DNA from: Rebecca billardiae RCC1528
Lineage: Eukaryota > Protista > Haptophyta
DNA: 64,000 bases
Assembly: GCA_965240325.2 (NCBI GenBank)
Contig: OZ251230.1
Coordinates: 1,364,001-1,428,000 of the forward strand
Direction: 5' to 3'
Made by a program: the position numbers and the translations under genes. The notes beneath the pieces were generated by a model that was not told the DNA's origin, did no database searches, and was given only the letters and a program-made list of their open reading frames with translations. Position 1 is the first letter of the stretch, and the number at the start of each line of letters is the position of its first letter. Shown in pieces: positions 15,501 through 40,806 of this stretch.

Positions 15501-15671
15501 TGAAGAAGAGTTCTGGGAGACCCTGGCGGAGAGGCATGGCAAGGGGGGCGTGTGGTGAAGTCGGAGACTCAGAGATCGATCAGTCCGGCATCATGCGCCG
15601 CTGCCCCCGAGCTTGCGAGAGCCCGAACACAGGGCGGCGGCTGCGGCGGCGGCGGCCCGCGCGGCGGCACG

Positions 15672-15828
15672 GCCGCGCGGCCGGCCGCGCAGGCATCGAC
15701 AGGGCGCGGCAGGGGCGTGCGGAGTGACTAGTGAGCGGGCACGAACGCGATGTCGACGGCCGTCGGGACCCGCCGCAGACGCGCGCTCCAGGCGCCACTC
15801 GGCACTCGCCACGCGCACCTGCCCATCG
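15672..15828 (-). repeat. Dispersed repeat; inverted homolog of 61123-61263
   Basis: Shared cgatgggcaggtgcgc...gcgggtcccgac.gccgtcgacatcgcgttcgtgccc...gtcgatgcctgcgcg; both copies translate to [12 protein letters not shown] in the ORF track. Confidence 0.8.
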
Positions 15829-16167
15829 AGCGCCCCCTTGCGGACCAACCAAGAGTCGTCGCGGCTCGCTCGCCACCCCCGAACGAAGAAACCTGCACAC
15901 GTCGTCCTTGCGACGGCGGCAGGTTTTGAGCTCGCCCGCAGCTCGGTAAGTCAGTGACTATGGAATGGGCTGGCAACGAATAGCTGCGCGGGTATTTTCA
16001 ATACTAAGGCTTGCGGGTTTTAGACTCTAGAATCTCTAGATACCGCAACCGCCGCGAAGCCAAGTTCATATTCATCAAGGCGGAGGCAAACTAAAAGAGT
16101 CCGGTCATACGCGACCCGCTTCCTCTGCAATCCCAGCTTTCGGCATACGCGGGTACTACGATACATT

Positions 16168-18311: not shown

Positions 18312-19426
18312 CAAGGGTGTCCAGGGTCCGCAACAGCCAGTGCGCAGCGCGGCAGAGGCTGTGACATCGCGAGGTCGCCGCTCGCCAGTGGGACTCGCCC
18401 GCCCGCCGCCGTGCACGGTGGCCGAGCCGCTCGCGCCGTGCGCTCCTGCGGCCGTCGGATCGGGCTGCGTAGGCGGCGCGCGGCGTGGGCCGTCGCAGAG
18501 CCACCCAGCGCCCCTCGCTGCGCCGCGCGCCTTCCTCGTCCTCGCCTCCTCCGCGCCTTGAAGCAGCACGCACACGCGCGGCGCCGCCACAAAAGCAGCG
18601 CAGGCGCTCGCGTGCAAGCGTGCGCGCGCGCAGCGCGACGGGCTCGACTCGGGGCTCGCGCCGCTGCGGGGGCATGCAGCACCATCCCATGCGCGCGCGA
18701 CGCCACCTCGAGCCTGCGCGTTTGACCGTCAGTGCACGCTGATGCACGTTACAAAATGGTCTGACTTGGCATCATCACACGTGCGACGGAAGCTTCCACA
18801 ACGGGCCTTGAGGGCGTCGACGCGATCGATGCGGAGACGGTCATGCTTGCGTGCGCTTCTCTTGTGGTCTCCACGCGTGCTGAGAAGCGCCGCGTACGTA
18901 GCTGTCATCGTGTCTTGCCTAAGAAGTTGTCCTGACGCATGGCAGGTTCTGGTCAGATTGGGCCTACTTCAACACGAGGACGTGTGAGCATTTGGCGCGT
19001 GACGGTCACAGCGATGCGCAGGCTCGAGGTGGCGTCGCGCGCGCATGGGATGGTGCTGCATGCCCCCGCAGCGGCGCGAGCCCCGAGTCGAGCCCGTCGC
19101 GCTGCGCGCGCGCACGCTTGCACGCGAGCGCCTGCGCTGCTTTTGTGGCGGCGCCGCGCGTGTGCGTGCTGCTTCAAGGCGCGGAGGAGGCGAGGACGAG
19201 GAAGGCGCGCGGCGCAGCGAGGGGCGCTGGGTGGCTCTGCGACGGCCCACGCCGCGCGCCGCCTACGCAGCCCGATCCGACGGCCGCAGGAGCGCACGGC
19301 GCGAGCGGCTCGGCCACCGTGCACGGCGGCGGGCGGGCGAGTCCCACTGGCGAGCGGCGACCTCGCGATGTCACAGCCTCTGCCGCGCTGCGCACTGGCT
19401 GTTATTGCGGACCCTGGACACCCTTG
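18312..19426. mobile_element. Foldback DNA transposon A (1115 bp): TIRs 18312-18719 and 19016-19426, 7-bp TSD GTACCCC
   Basis: The arms are reverse complements, apparently differing only by a 3-nt indel. Termini are CAAGGG...CCCTTG. gtacccc occurs at 18305-18311 and 19427-19433. No transposase ORF. Confidence 0.92.
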
Positions 19427-23305: not shown

Positions 23306-24427
23306 CAAGGGGAGTCAGGGTACAGCACGTCCAGTTGGGCTGCAGCTGGAGCTTGGGTCCAAAAGCTTCCCGCCGCGCAGCGGCACTCGCCGCCGCCGCC
23401 GCCGTCGATGGGCGGTTGTGGCGCGCACGGCGTGAGCCGCTGCGGGCGCTGAGGTGCGCGCGACGGCGGCGCGCCCGGCGGCGCTGCTGTAGGAGACCAC
23501 TGCCCTCCTCTCTGCCCCGCGCGCTTCGCTCGTCGTCGCCGTCTCCGCGCCTGCGACCAGCGCGCACGCGATCGCCGCACCGCCCGGCAGCCGGGGCAAT
23601 CTCAGCCGTGACTGCGCATGTGCGTCGCGACCTGGTCGGCCCAGCGCGCGAGGCGCGTGTGGGCGAGGCAGGGCCAGTGTGGCCGCGCGCCATGCCGCCT
23701 CGACCTTGCGCCGGTGGGCATGTCGCCGGCCTTGCACCTCTGTCGACAACGTTGACAACCAATGCGGCACGCAAGCGCAGACGTCAGTGTGCACGATCGA
23801 GGCAGTAGGCGTACAGACGCGATAGTTGCAGAGCCTTTTGTGATCATGCGAGTCATGCATTGTCAGCGACTCTCGCCCAGGTCGTCTGCGCGCTGAACTG
23901 ACGTTTTGACTGAGTGCCTCGAGATCGCCTCGACGATGGCCCGTGCATTGCTTGAACACTCACCACAGTCCAAGCGGGCAACCAGACACATGTGCTCAGT
24001 TCCCTGTTGTACGCTCTGATGGGCTTACTTGAGGCGGCATGGCGCGCGGCCACACTGGTCCTACCTCGCCCACACGCGCCTCGCGCGCTGGGCCGACCAG
24101 GTCGCGACGCACATGCGCAGTCACGGCTGAGATTGCCCCGGCGGCCGGGCGGTGCGGCGCTCGCGTGCGCGCTGAGTCGCAGGCGCGGAGACGGCGACGA
24201 CGAGCGAAGCGCGCGGGGCAGAGAGGAGGGCAGAGGCCTCCTACAGCAGCGCCGCCGGGCGCGCCGCCGTCGCGCGCACCTCAGCGCCCGCAGTGGCTCA
24301 CGCCGTGCGCGCCACAACCGCCCCTCGACGGCGGCGGCGGCGGCGAGTGCCGCTGCGCCGCGGGAAGCTTTTGGACCCAAGCTCCAGCTGCAGCCCAACT
24401 GGACGTGCTGTACCCTGACTCCCCTTG
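23306..24427. mobile_element. Foldback DNA transposon B (1122 bp): TIRs 23306-23701 and 24031-24427, 7-bp TSD GTCGAGG
   Basis: Reverse-complementary arms with roughly ten differences. Termini are CAAGGGGAGTCAGGG...CCCTGACTCCCCTTG. gtcgagg occurs at 23299-23305 and 24428-24434. Confidence 0.92.
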
Positions 24428-24575
24428 GTCGAGGCAAGGGTCGGACATCCTGAAAGTGCTCGCGACACCCAGACCGGCGGCCCAACTGGTATTAATATTT
24501 GCGTGCAGTTGAAGTTCACAATTGGCGGCGTTCACAGTTTGCCTCGCCGTACTGATGTTGAGTGATGTACGACCA

Positions 24576-37255: not shown

Positions 37256-40200
37256 ATGAGGCCGTGGCACGGCCCAGAGGACCTCGCCGGGCTGGGCGAG
37301 CAGCTCGTCGGCGGCTGGGCTGGCGCGCCCACGGCGGTGCTGATCGCCAGCGTGGCCGCACTCCTCCTTACCGCGCTCGCCCACCGCAGGCACGCGCTGC
37401 TTGCGCGTGCGCGTGCGTGGCGGGCGGCAGTCTCGGCCCGCGCGAGCGCGCGCGCGCGCAAGGCGGACTTCTTGGCGCGCGCCGGTGCCGACTACGGGTA
37501 CGGCGGATCACTTGCCGGCCACATCGATAGCTGGCGTGCGGCTGAGCTGCCCGCGCTCATCCCGCCCCTCGGCGCTCGGTCCCGCGCGCGGTCGCGCGCG
37601 CGCGGCACGTGCGCGCCCATCATCTACCTGGACTACGCTGGCGCCGCGCTGCCCGTGGCGTCCCAGCTACGCGAGGTGCACGCGCTTCTCGAGGGGTGCG
37701 CGTTCGGCAATCCGCACTCGAGCGGCCCGGCCGCCGCCGCCTCCGCGCGCGCCGCCGAGCGCGCGCGCCAGATGACGCTCCGGCTGCTGTGTGGTCCGGA
37801 CGCGCACAACTGGGAGTGCGTCTTCGTCTCGGGCGCGAGCGCGGGCCTGCGGCTCGTCGCGGAGGCGTTCCCGTTCGCGCAGGGCTCGCGCTTCGCCCAC
37901 GCGGAGGACGCGCACACCTCCGTCCTCGGCATGCGCCGCGTCGCCGAGGCCGCGGGCGCAGACGTGCGCTGTGTGCGCGCCGGCTCGGCCGCAGCGGACT
38001 GGGCGCGGCTCGCACCGCTCGCGTGCGCTGACGGCGCGGAGGCGCAGGAGGAGCAGGCGGCGGCGGAGCGGCGGCACCACCTCGCCGTGCTTGCGCTCGA
38101 GTCCAACTTTGACGGCCGACGCGTCGACCTCGCCGCGGTGAGCGCCGCGCTCCACGCGCGCGCGCCGCCGCGTACCGACCGATCACCCGGCGCGATGGCG
38201 GCAGCCGCTGCCGACGGCGACAGCGGCGCCGGCTGCCGCGCCGCGGATGACGGCGGTGGCCGACTGCCCGGCGCGAACGACCGGTGGTGGGTGCTCGCGG
38301 ACGTGGCGAAGGCGGCGAGCACCGGGCCGGTCGACCTCGGTGCCCTCGGCGCCGACTTCGCCGTCCTTTCGTTCTACAAGCTGTTTGGCGCGCCCACGGG
38401 CCTCGGGTGCGTGCTCGCGACGCGGCGCGGCGCGCGGCTGCTGCGCGCCGCGCGCGAGCGGGGCGGGTACTATGGCGGCGGCACGGTGTCTGCGGTGCTC
38501 GCACGCTCGAGCGTGGCGGTGCCGCGCCCGTCCTTCGCCGCGGCGTTCGCCGACGGCACGCCCCACTTCCTCGGCGCGCTGCAGCTGCCCGCCGGCTTTG
38601 GCGCCGTCGAGCGCATCGGCGGGTTTGGGGCGGTGTGTGCGCACACGCGCGCGCTCGGCGCGGAGCTGCGCGCGCGGCTGGGTGCGCTGCGGCACGCCGA
38701 CGGCTCGGAGGCGGTGGTGCTCTACGGCGCAGAGTGCGCGAGCTCGTCCATCGTCGCCTTCAACGTGCGCCTCCCGCGAGCCGCCGACCCGAACGCCGGG
38801 GCGGGCTGGGTGAGTGCTGCCGAGGTGGTGAGGCTGGCAGCGTGCGCGCGGCCGGCGCTGCAGCTGCGCTCGGGGTGCTTCTGCAACCCGGGCGCGTGCC
38901 AGGCGGCGCTCGGGCTGGACGACGAGGCGGTGCTCGCCTCGCTCGCCGCCGGCCACGTCTGCGGCGACGAGCGCGACCTCGACCCGCGCACGGGCCGGCC
39001 GCTCGCCGCCGTCCGCGCGTCGGTTGGCAAGGACTCGAGCTGGGAGGACGTGGACGGGCTGGTCCGGTTCGTCGCCCGGACTTTCGTGCTCGACGGTCCG
39101 GATGGGCGGGCGGAGGCGGCGGAGGGCGGCGCGGCGTCAGCGCGCGAGGAGGGCGCCGAGCCGGCGGCGCCGCCCTCCCCGCGCCCGCCGCCGCCGCACG
39201 TGCTCACCCAGCTGTACGTGCACCCACTCAAGTCGTGCGCGGCGCAGGCCGCGCGCCGGTGGCCGCTGTGCGCGCGCTGCGGCCGGCTTCGGTATGATCG
39301 CGAGTGGGCGGTGGTCGACGCGACGGGCGCGGCGATGCGGCTGCGGCAGTACCCGGCGCTCGCGCACATCCGGCCGAGCGTCGACCTGCGCGCGCGCACG
39401 CTCACGCTGCGGTGCGACAGCATGGCTGCGGCGCTCACTCTGCCGCTGGACGGCGAGGCAGGCGGCGCGGCGGGCGGCGCGGCGCGCGGCGCGGGGGGTG
39501 ACGGGCCGGGCGGCGATGCGCGCGTGCTCGATGCTGGGTGCGGCTGTGCCCGCCGGCCCAGCGCCGCGCGCGACGGCGGCGCCGCTGCGCACGCCGCGTG
39601 CGCGCTTCGGTGGGCCGCCGAGGGCGGCTGCTGCACCCCGGAGGGCGGCCCCTCTCCGGTCGGGTCAGCGGGCGCTCACGATCAGCCGCCGCAGCCGCCG
39701 CCGCAGCAGCAGCGGCCGGAGCGGCCGCAGCAGCCGGCGGCTCGCGCGCGGGCGGGCGGCGCGGCCGCGGCCATGCGCCATGCCGTCGAGGGCGAGACCG
39801 AGCCCGGCCTGAGCGTGTGTGGCGAGGCGTGCGCGGGGAAGCAGTGGGGCGGCAGCGCCGCCGCCGCGTGGCTCTCGGAAGCTCTGGGCGTGTCTTGCCG
39901 ACTGATGCGCGCCGCCGCGTCTGTGTCCAGCCTGGCAGAGCCGACCGCGCCCCCTGCGGCGCCCGGCGGCCTGGGCGGGGCGGCGGGCAGCAGCGCGAAG
40001 GCCGCACGCAGCCGCGGCGGTGCCGTCGAGGAGGAGGACGGGCCGCGCCGGCCCGATCCCGGCCGCGAGCGGCTGGCGTTCGCCAACGAGGCACCCCTCC
40101 TCCTACTCTCACAGCCAGCGGTCGACCGGCTCAACCGCGCGCTTGCCGCACGCGCCGCGCCCGCCGTGAAGGCACTCCACTTCCGGCCGAACCTGGTGGT

Positions 40201-40762
40201 GGCCCCGCTCAGCGCGGCGCGCGCGCGCGCGGCCGCGTGGGTCGCGCCGGCGCGCGCCGGCGCCGCCGCCGCGGGGCCGACGCACCCCGAGGACGGCTGG
40301 CGCTCGATCGAGCTCGCGTGCGTGCGCGGCGCAGACGCTGTCACTCCGCCGCCGCCCGCGGCGCCTGTCGACGCGCGGCTGAGGCTGCGCGTGACAGGCC
40401 CGTGCGCGCGCTGCGCCACGGTGGACGTGGACCCGACGCGCGGCGAGACGAACGGCGCCGCGCTACGCACGCTCGCGCGGTACCGCCGCGTGGGCCAGGA
40501 CGTGCACTTTGGCGTGTTCCTCGCGCCCGAGCGCCGCGCTGCGCGCGCGTCGGACACGTCGTCCGAGTCAGCAGACACGGCGGCCGAGGGCGGAGGGGAG
40601 GAGGCAGATGGAGGCGGCGGCGGTGCTGGCGGCGCGGGCGCGCGGCTGGGCGAGCAGCCGGCGGGCGCGGGTGCCGATGCCGAGGCGGACGCGGACGCGG
40701 AGGCGGAGCCGGGCGTGCTCTGGGTGCGTGTGGACACGTTCGCGCAGCCCTGCACCAGCTGA
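37256..40762 (+). CDS. MOCOS: Molybdenum cofactor sulfurase (NifS-like PLP domain plus MOSC domain) with hydrophobic N-terminal extension
   Basis: IYLDYAGAAL, FGNPHS, DFAVLSFYKLFGAPTGLG, LRSGCFCNPGAC, LYVHPLKSCAA, YDREWAVVD, FANEAPLLL, FRPNLVV, GPCARC. Confidence 0.93.
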   Translation: MRPWHGPEDLAGLGEQLVGGWAGAPTAVLIASVAALLLTALAHRRHALLARARAWRAAVSARASARARKADFLARAGADYGYGGSLAGHIDSWRAAELPALIPPLGARSRARSRARGTCAPIIYLDYAGAALPVASQLREVHALLEGCAFGNPHSSGPAAAASARAAERARQMTLRLLCGPDAHNWECVFVSGASAGLRLVAEAFPFAQGSRFAHAEDAHTSVLGMRRVAEAAGADVRCVRAGSAAADWARLAPLACADGAEAQEEQAAAERRHHLAVLALESNFDGRRVDLAAVSAALHARAPPRTDRSPGAMAAAAADGDSGAGCRAADDGGGRLPGANDRWWVLADVAKAASTGPVDLGALGADFAVLSFYKLFGAPTGLGCVLATRRGARLLRAARERGGYYGGGTVSAVLARSSVAVPRPSFAAAFADGTPHFLGALQLPAGFGAVERIGGFGAVCAHTRALGAELRARLGALRHADGSEAVVLYGAECASSSIVAFNVRLPRAADPNAGAGWVSAAEVVRLAACARPALQLRSGCFCNPGACQAALGLDDEAVLASLAAGHVCGDERDLDPRTGRPLAAVRASVGKDSSWEDVDGLVRFVARTFVLDGPDGRAEAAEGGAASAREEGAEPAAPPSPRPPPPHVLTQLYVHPLKSCAAQAARRWPLCARCGRLRYDREWAVVDATGAAMRLRQYPALAHIRPSVDLRARTLTLRCDSMAAALTLPLDGEAGGAAGGAARGAGGDGPGGDARVLDAGCGCARRPSAARDGGAAAHAACALRWAAEGGCCTPEGGPSPVGSAGAHDQPPQPPPQQQRPERPQQPAARARAGGAAAAMRHAVEGETEPGLSVCGEACAGKQWGGSAAAAWLSEALGVSCRLMRAAASVSSLAEPTAPPAAPGGLGGAAGSSAKAARSRGGAVEEEDGPRRPDPGRERLAFANEAPLLLLSQPAVDRLNRALAARAAPAVKALHFRPNLVVAPLSAARARAAAWVAPARAGAAAAGPTHPEDGWRSIELACVRGADAVTPPPPAAPVDARLRLRVTGPCARCATVDVDPTRGETNGAALRTLARYRRVGQDVHFGVFLAPERRAARASDTSSESADTAAEGGGEEADGGGGGAGGAGARLGEQPAGAGADAEADADAEAEPGVLWVRVDTFAQPCTS

Positions 40763-40777
40763 GCACGCGCTGGCTGA

Positions 40778-40806
40778 GACGGGCCAAGGGACTCCCTTGG
40801 ACGGGC
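40778..40806. mobile_element. Putative excision footprint of the CAAGGG foldback family
   Basis: gacgggc-caagggactcccttg-gacgggc: 15 bp of both element termini between an exact 7-bp direct repeat. Confidence 0.8.

Follow-up and report, generated by a model that had tools for sequence, protein, structure and literature searches.

The window analysed here is the whole 64,000-nucleotide stretch of DNA from Rebecca billardiae RCC1528 (contig OZ251230.1, positions 1,364,001 to 1,428,000), and window coordinates are counted from its first letter. At a distance of 16 nt from the stop codon of a MOCOS-type open reading frame, presumably in the 3′ UTR of that gene, direct reading gives GACGGGC + CAAGGGACTCCCTTG + GACGGGC (lower-case core, caagggactcccttg), so that the gacgggc-flanked 15-bp core claimed by the original prediction just past the MOCOS stop is confirmed at 40778-40806. 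The features of the window on which the argument relies are the following.

37256 to 40762, plus strand: MOCOS-type open reading frame of 1168 aa with Aminotran_5, MOSC_N and MOSC domains
40778 to 40784, no strand assigned: left copy of the target-site duplication (TSD), GACGGGC, identical to 40800-40806
40785 to 40799, no strand assigned: 15-bp core CAAGGGACTCCCTTG with both tip remnants, CAAGG + GACTC + CCTTG
40800 to 40806, no strand assigned: right copy of the TSD, GACGGGC, as in the window sequence
18312 to 19426, no strand assigned: full-length foldback element A, tip CAAGGGTGTCC, TSD GTACCCC
23306 to 24427, no strand assigned: full-length foldback element B, tip CAAGGGGAGTC, TSD GTCGAGG

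The 29-mer made of the core and the two TSD copies is found once in the window, with up to 3 mismatches permitted, and the pattern CAAGGG N0-30 CCCTTG also occurs once, against an expectation of 0.06. The junction carries a 2-nt direct-repeat ambiguity (GA...GA). A 1.4-kb query spanning the locus returned the self-match alone from the assembly, with neither a second haplotype nor a paralogue, and the upstream flank of the scar, scanned against metagenome contigs for exact matches, gave none.

Elements A and B are 1.1 kb long each, with arms of approximately 400 nt that are 99-100% complementary. When subfamily D (tip CAAGGGAGTCAAGGGTGCCC, approx. 1109 bp) is also taken into account, the arms are again approximately 400 nt and 98.5-100% complementary, so that most of the element consists of inverted repeats. 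For element B, 327 genomic candidates were found at first look, and the 40 of them that were scored yielded 42 matches, nearly all 97-100% identical. Tips beginning CAAGGGAGTC number 198 (control, 8), the majority belonging to subfamily D among the matches listed. Perfect 7-bp TSDs are present in 36 of the 37 fetched full-length D and B copies having both ends. Subfamily C is a 268-bp MITE (tip CAAGGGGCTTACAAAATACCAC) with an imperfect terminal repeat of approximately 87 nt (83% identity), not of the foldback type, and its TSDs are perfect in seven of eight copies; subfamily E, the 5-G type, has the tip CAAGGGGGTTCAA. A literature search for a foldback family in haptophytes found nothing. A triplicated segment carrying a D element, in which a footprint or an empty paralogue was sought, proved to be occupied in all three copies, and a short-element candidate at window positions 15540-15840, without a TSD, was discarded.

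Other observations concern the organization of the tips. One D element (contig 10, 2718422-2719595; L107) is extended symmetrically by 15 bp beyond each of its tips (CAAGGGTAGTAAGGG...), its 7-bp TSD lying outside the extension, and the D tip resembles CAAGGGAGT set before a CAAGGGTG-type tip; from such sequence comparisons, the tips of the family seem to be layered outward. D copies sit in the tips of other members, with the TSDs CAAGGGT and GTCAAGG (L097; contig 3, 1230693-1230741), and self-nesting is therefore common in the family. Immediately after the right TSD of element B (window 24435-24450) the flank begins CAAGGGTCGGACATCC; the landing site of element B may have bordered on an older tip, for which no partner end was found within the window. 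An unrelated sequence, ATTCTATGATTTAACGACACAGG..., interrupts two right tips, one in a B copy and the other in a D derivative, in both cases at the point after GACTC, and may be another element favouring the GACTC tip position. Finally, inverted CAAGGGGCTTACAAA(A) tip pairs lying 0.6-1.5 kb apart have only the first 15-19 nt in common and lack TSDs that match; instead of being elements, they may be remnants or simply neighbours with no relation to each other. The interrupted tips and the inverted pairs (L132-L134) are located as follows.

Contig 14, approx. 837.9k (L110): ATTCTATGATTTAACGACACAGG-interrupted tip
Contig 8, 879443-879535 (L069): ATTCTATGATTTAACGACACAGG-interrupted tip
Contig 7, 2192271-2192838: inverted CAAGGGGCTTACAAA(A) pair
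Contig 29, 1099289-1100341: inverted CAAGGGGCTTACAAA(A) pair
Contig 17, 1340362-1341877: inverted CAAGGGGCTTACAAA(A) pair

The check attached to the original prediction, a genome-wide count of the motif set against a control, reveals a marked excess: CAAGGG N0-25 CCCTTG occurs 339 times, compared with 16 occurrences of the reversed control. Enrichment is thus 21-fold for units of 12-37 bp and 5.5-fold for those with 38-67-bp cores (105 versus 19 in the control). The TSD fraction was measured on a sample made of the first 50 of the 339 sites. At 24 of the 50, the unit is immediately flanked by a perfect direct repeat whose length is exactly 7 bp, while flanking repeats of 5, 6, 8 or 9 bp are found at 0-1 sites, as are 7-mer repeats shifted by 1-10 bp from the unit. 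The core length is 12-21 bp in sampled units with TSDs and reaches 34 bp in those without. By applying the sampled fraction (48%) to the 339 sites, roughly 160 clean scars of the simple type can be estimated in the genome, longer scars being extra. The exact 15-mer CAAGGGACTCCCTTG is present in 11 copies (control, 0), six of which have perfect 7-bp TSDs and one more a match at five of seven positions; besides the MOCOS site, it is therefore found at 10 loci, five of them with perfect 7-bp TSDs. The scar motif is a non-chance structure.

With respect to the donor, the core had been read initially as a left tip joined to a right tip resembling that of element B. The two-tip composition holds, but the assignment of the right tip does not: element B as the donor needs a lost C, whereas subfamily D fits without any indel, its tip CAAGGGAGTCAAGGGTGCCC matching exactly. 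When two 10-nt D tips (CAAGGGAGTC on the left, GACTCCCTTG on the right) are overlapped by 5 nt (GAGTC versus GACTC), CAAGG-GACTC-CCTTG is obtained, which is exactly the observed core. Judged by its tip sequence, the donor of the scar is a member of subfamily D. Two tails can pair at GAGTC because this stretch is self-complementary except for its centre, and annealing at the first self-complementary stretch of the tip matches the scar lengths across subfamilies. Thus, GAGTC at tip positions 7-11 predicts a 17-bp scar for subfamily B, TTCAA at positions 9-13 of CAAGGGGGTTCAA a 21-bp scar for subfamily E, and the same rule a 20-bp scar for the CAAGGGCGGTACC-type tip; all three were seen. The commonest scar, CAAGGGCCCTTG, fits tips starting CAAGGGCC (GGCC at positions 5-8), with which several repeat families begin (for the 8-mer, approx. 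1250 per strand, versus approx. 530 for the control), and it appears to derive from tips of this type. The D and B tips contain stronger self-complementary stretches deeper in (GGGTGCCC and CGCG in D, GTAC in B), which are not the usual junctions in D and B scars; in these subfamilies the tails may be either shorter or resected.

That the scars mark former insertion sites is indicated by their flanks. A TSD profile, G-Y-N-N-N-R-C/G (G dominant at position 1, T/C at 2, A/G at 6 and C/G at 7), is common to 42 full-length copies and 28 scars. In an unbiased scar sample, a pyrimidine is found at position 2 in 22 of 25 cases (p = 1.6e-4) and a purine at position 6 in 21 of 25 (p = 9e-4). The MOCOS-site TSD agrees with the family profile in having G at 1, R at 6 and C at 7, and its A at position 2 is rare in the family. 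Alignment of a sister scar within a dispersed repeat with two empty paralogues demonstrates an insertion of exactly 19 bp, made of one extra CCTGAGC and a 12-bp core. At another scar (L010) filler has been copied from its own TSD, and TSD-templated filler is a hallmark of end joining. At the MOCOS site itself, a duplication of the length proper to the family (7 bp) directly flanks a remnant derived from the tips of a family present in the genome. Strong support for the proposal that excision left both tips within an intact 7-bp TSD comes from the excess of the motif across the genome, flanking repeats of exactly 7 bp, a target profile common to scars and full-length copies, the empty site of the sister scar and the exact match with the D tip. 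What lies at the MOCOS site is a true excision scar, a fairly ordinary by-product in a transposon family that is active.

The length of tip retained carries information on the cut. In subfamilies A, B, D and E each side keeps 5-14 nt (5-10 nt at the MOCOS site), and in C up to 22-23 nt; remnants of 36-38 bp recur in C, the 38-bp unit at at least seven loci and a 37-bp variant at four; an insert limit of approximately 34 bp, as predicted initially, therefore fails. Of the 20 subfamily C remnants examined, 11 have a long side that runs to tip position 22/23 and meets the opposite tip, at its position 16 or 15, through a single T:A pair. In a one-sided C remnant, GTCGGAC is followed by exactly 22 nt of tip and again by GTCGGAC, the opposite tip being wholly absent.

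Contig 22, 1341108-1341143 (L151:44-79): one-sided subfamily C remnant

Such a constant end point speaks for a cut at a fixed distance of approximately 22-23 nt inside the end in subfamily C, and against purely stochastic copying. Overall, the retained lengths would fit a long stagger, not specifically one of 17 nt. The class with 38-67-bp cores also includes internal-deletion derivatives, one of which is a 65-bp derivative of B.

Excision may nevertheless have been real while the tips are uninformative on the cut. After a break made by any cut-and-paste transposase, SDSA or interrupted gap repair on a sister chromatid or homologue could have copied a few nucleotides, with the strands annealing at GAGTC. 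The nascent strands would have the same sequence as the tails of a staggered cut, so that every observed junction fits; units with 38-67-bp cores (105 versus 19), including the 65-bp internal-deletion derivative of B, would be part of the expected continuum, and the templated TSD filler at one scar (L010) is also in keeping with such repair. Stalling is stochastic, however, whereas the long side in C is fixed at 22/23 in 11 of 20 remnants and at 22 in the one-sided remnant, and the enrichment is 21-fold for 12-37-bp units against 5.5-fold for 38-67 bp. We regard this origin of the tips as possible, though rather unlikely; it would remove the inference of a P-type cut and leave excision in place. 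Loss of the element with no transposase at all, the foldback palindrome being lost through processing of a hairpin or cruciform, or through replication slippage between GA...GA, with the base of the stem left behind, appears very improbable. Long near-perfect palindromes are generally held to be unstable, the arms of A, B and D (approx. 400 nt, 98.5-100% complementary) qualify as such, and the 2-nt direct-repeat ambiguity at the junction agrees with slippage. Yet C, a 268-bp MITE with an 83% repeat of approximately 87 nt, leaves the same TSD-flanked remnants, both TSDs are intact when slippage at 7 bp should beat slippage at 2 nt, and the one-sided remnant (L151) with its fixed 22-nt end does not fit.

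The 15-bp palindrome might instead be a minimal mobile two-tip unit that inserted as such with a 7-bp duplication, since flanks alone cannot separate insertions from excision scars and identical units recur, with differing TSDs, at numerous loci (11 for the 15-mer; in C, at least seven for the 38-bp unit and four for the 37-bp unit). The recurrence is, however, accounted for by deterministic annealing at GAGTC, many junction types are present per subfamily, as repair products should show, and a duplex of 12-15 bp is not long enough to bend so that a paired-end complex could form; insertion of such a unit is hence highly improbable. A genome of approximately 70% G+C that is rich in short repeats could in principle also generate a chance palindrome between chance copies of a 7-bp repeat. 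With a window expectation of 0.06, genome-wide counts of 339 versus 16, 11 versus 0 for the 15-mer and flanking repeats of 7 bp only, a chance origin is effectively refuted.

Returning to excision of a D element, it is very probable that such an element inserted at GACGGGC and was later excised by cut-and-paste with its tips kept. For the site itself we infer the following order of events. A non-coding D foldback of approximately 1.1 kb (tip CAAGGGAGTC...) would have inserted at GACGGGC, 16 nt past the MOCOS stop, with duplication of 7 bp, and a cut-and-paste transposase would later have removed it. The outermost nucleotides of the element would have remained as single-strand tails of identical sequence on the two donor flanks, arising either from a cut of the non-transferred strand well inside the end or from the copying of a few nucleotides from a sister copy. 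The tails are then proposed to pair at the near-palindrome GAGTC (tip positions 6-10, with a central G-G mismatch), and trimming, filling and ligation would lead to 10 + 10 − 5 = 15 bp between two intact TSDs. The enzyme would most likely be a P-superfamily-type transposase acting in trans, the candidate being a P/THAP9-like gene on contig 21.

This gene is the single genomic match to the P-transposase RNase H model in profile searches. Its location and that of an adjoining repeat pair are given here.

Contig 21, 1532842-1536795 (L053:3843-7796), minus strand: intact P-like open reading frame of 1317 aa with P-transposase domains
Contig 21, 1524538-1532329 (L052/L053): direct-repeat pair

The RNaseH_N (E = 1.9e-7), GBD (0.027) and RNaseH_C (0.1) models match in the canonical order. 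The sole PDB match is the Drosophila P transposase (6p5a; E = 0.0025, C-terminal half), with aligned stretches that include SD.PHLIK.RN and LEHHFG and with conservation of the glutamate aligned to chain residue 531; the nearest protein-atlas neighbours are almost all P/THAP9 clusters. The C-terminal 540 aa correspond to a P/THAP9-type core, preceded by approximately 800 N-terminal aa with no family assigned. A THAP domain was not found with Pfam at E values up to 10, a divergent zinc finger being still possible. No paralogues of the catalytic region were found in the genome, the gene being single-copy; no CAAGGG/CCCTTG ends with matching 7-mers were found within approximately 14 kb around it, and no transposase was found encoded between CAAGGG inverted repeats of the family itself. 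A short motif 3′ of the reading frame, considered as a link to the family, was found to belong to another repeat. Two 563-bp direct repeats, 100% identical, 7229 bp apart and spanning approximately 7.8 kb, adjoin the gene and look like a very young LTR retrotransposon. From its sequence, the 1317-aa protein is a plausible trans-acting source of transposase for the foldback family.

The scar had also been presented as independent support for P-type chemistry, a role that it does not fill: the tips are 5-23 nt long rather than a fixed 17, gap repair gives the same scars, and the sole P-like gene is single-copy, lacks CAAGGG bounds and gave no THAP match. P-type chemistry is compatible with the data, and in its favour are the 7-bp TSDs, the Galileo-like foldback shape and target motif, and the one intact P/THAP9-like gene. 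By analogy, the P-type reading is the best available for the scars, and we consider its chances to be about even. On a more speculative and, in our view, unlikely reading, the scars would be the cleavage record of an undescribed algal P-like branch cutting approximately 22-23 nt inside the end, as opposed to 17, and might seed MITE subfamilies, in that filler captured between two retained tips would generate a new element with the same 16-23-nt ends. If true, it would account for the layered look of some tips and for the identity of unrelated short elements over exactly their first 16-22 nt.

The scar shows that the foldback family excises, so that it moves by cut-and-paste and not by copying alone, and that its passage leaves permanent palindromic insertions of 19-45 bp in or near genes, in this case beside a coding region. 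The consequence at the MOCOS site is small (22 extra bases past the stop codon). The genome-wide scar catalogue represents a natural read-out of the cut and of algal end joining obtained without genetics, and its analysis supplies a concrete candidate enzyme in an organism with few tools. What the present work contributes is the assignment of the donor to a subfamily, controls for flank length, a target profile common to scars and full-length copies, the end point at 22/23 nt and a P-like gene as candidate.

Among known systems, the staggered cut of P transposase is unusually long, at 17 nt (PMC7776569), and NHEJ after excision leaves overhang sequence between the TSDs (PMC3878927). Drosophila P footprints are similar to the present scars in that both TSDs are kept, with few to many inverted-repeat nucleotides between them, and in the location of junctions at short self-complementary stretches of identical tails. 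They differ in the TSD (8 bp versus 7 bp), the tip (CATGATG versus CAAGGG), the tails (17 nt versus 5-10 nt at the site and up to 22-23 in C) and the host, here a haptophyte-type alga. Galileo, which belongs to the P superfamily and is foldback-like, with 7-bp TSDs of consensus GTANTAC (PMC4168063), shares with the algal family the long inverted repeats and foldback shape, the TSD length, the many non-autonomous copies and a weakly palindromic target (G-Y-N-N-N-R-C/G in the alga). However, Galileo has copies with a THAP transposase between their own ends, whereas no coding CAAGGG-ended copy was found here, and its arms are internally repetitive rather than simple. The scars of Tc1/mariner and Stowaway elements are likewise composed of TSD, terminal nucleotides of the element and TSD, but with 2-3-nt tails per end and a TA duplication (PMC3878927) instead of 5-23 nt and 7 bp. 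hAT, Mutator and Transib elements also leave donor-site scars flanked by TSD remnants; their enzymes are reported to form hairpins on the flanks (PMC3878927; PMC5499845), which leads to altered or palindromic flank nucleotides and not to retained tips. Excision of piggyBac is seamless (PMC3878927), and for other superfamilies in rice both TSDs were intact in just 8 of 94 excisions (PMC4423477). With both TSDs kept and 5-14 nt retained per tip, the scars are therefore closer to those of P elements than to any others described.
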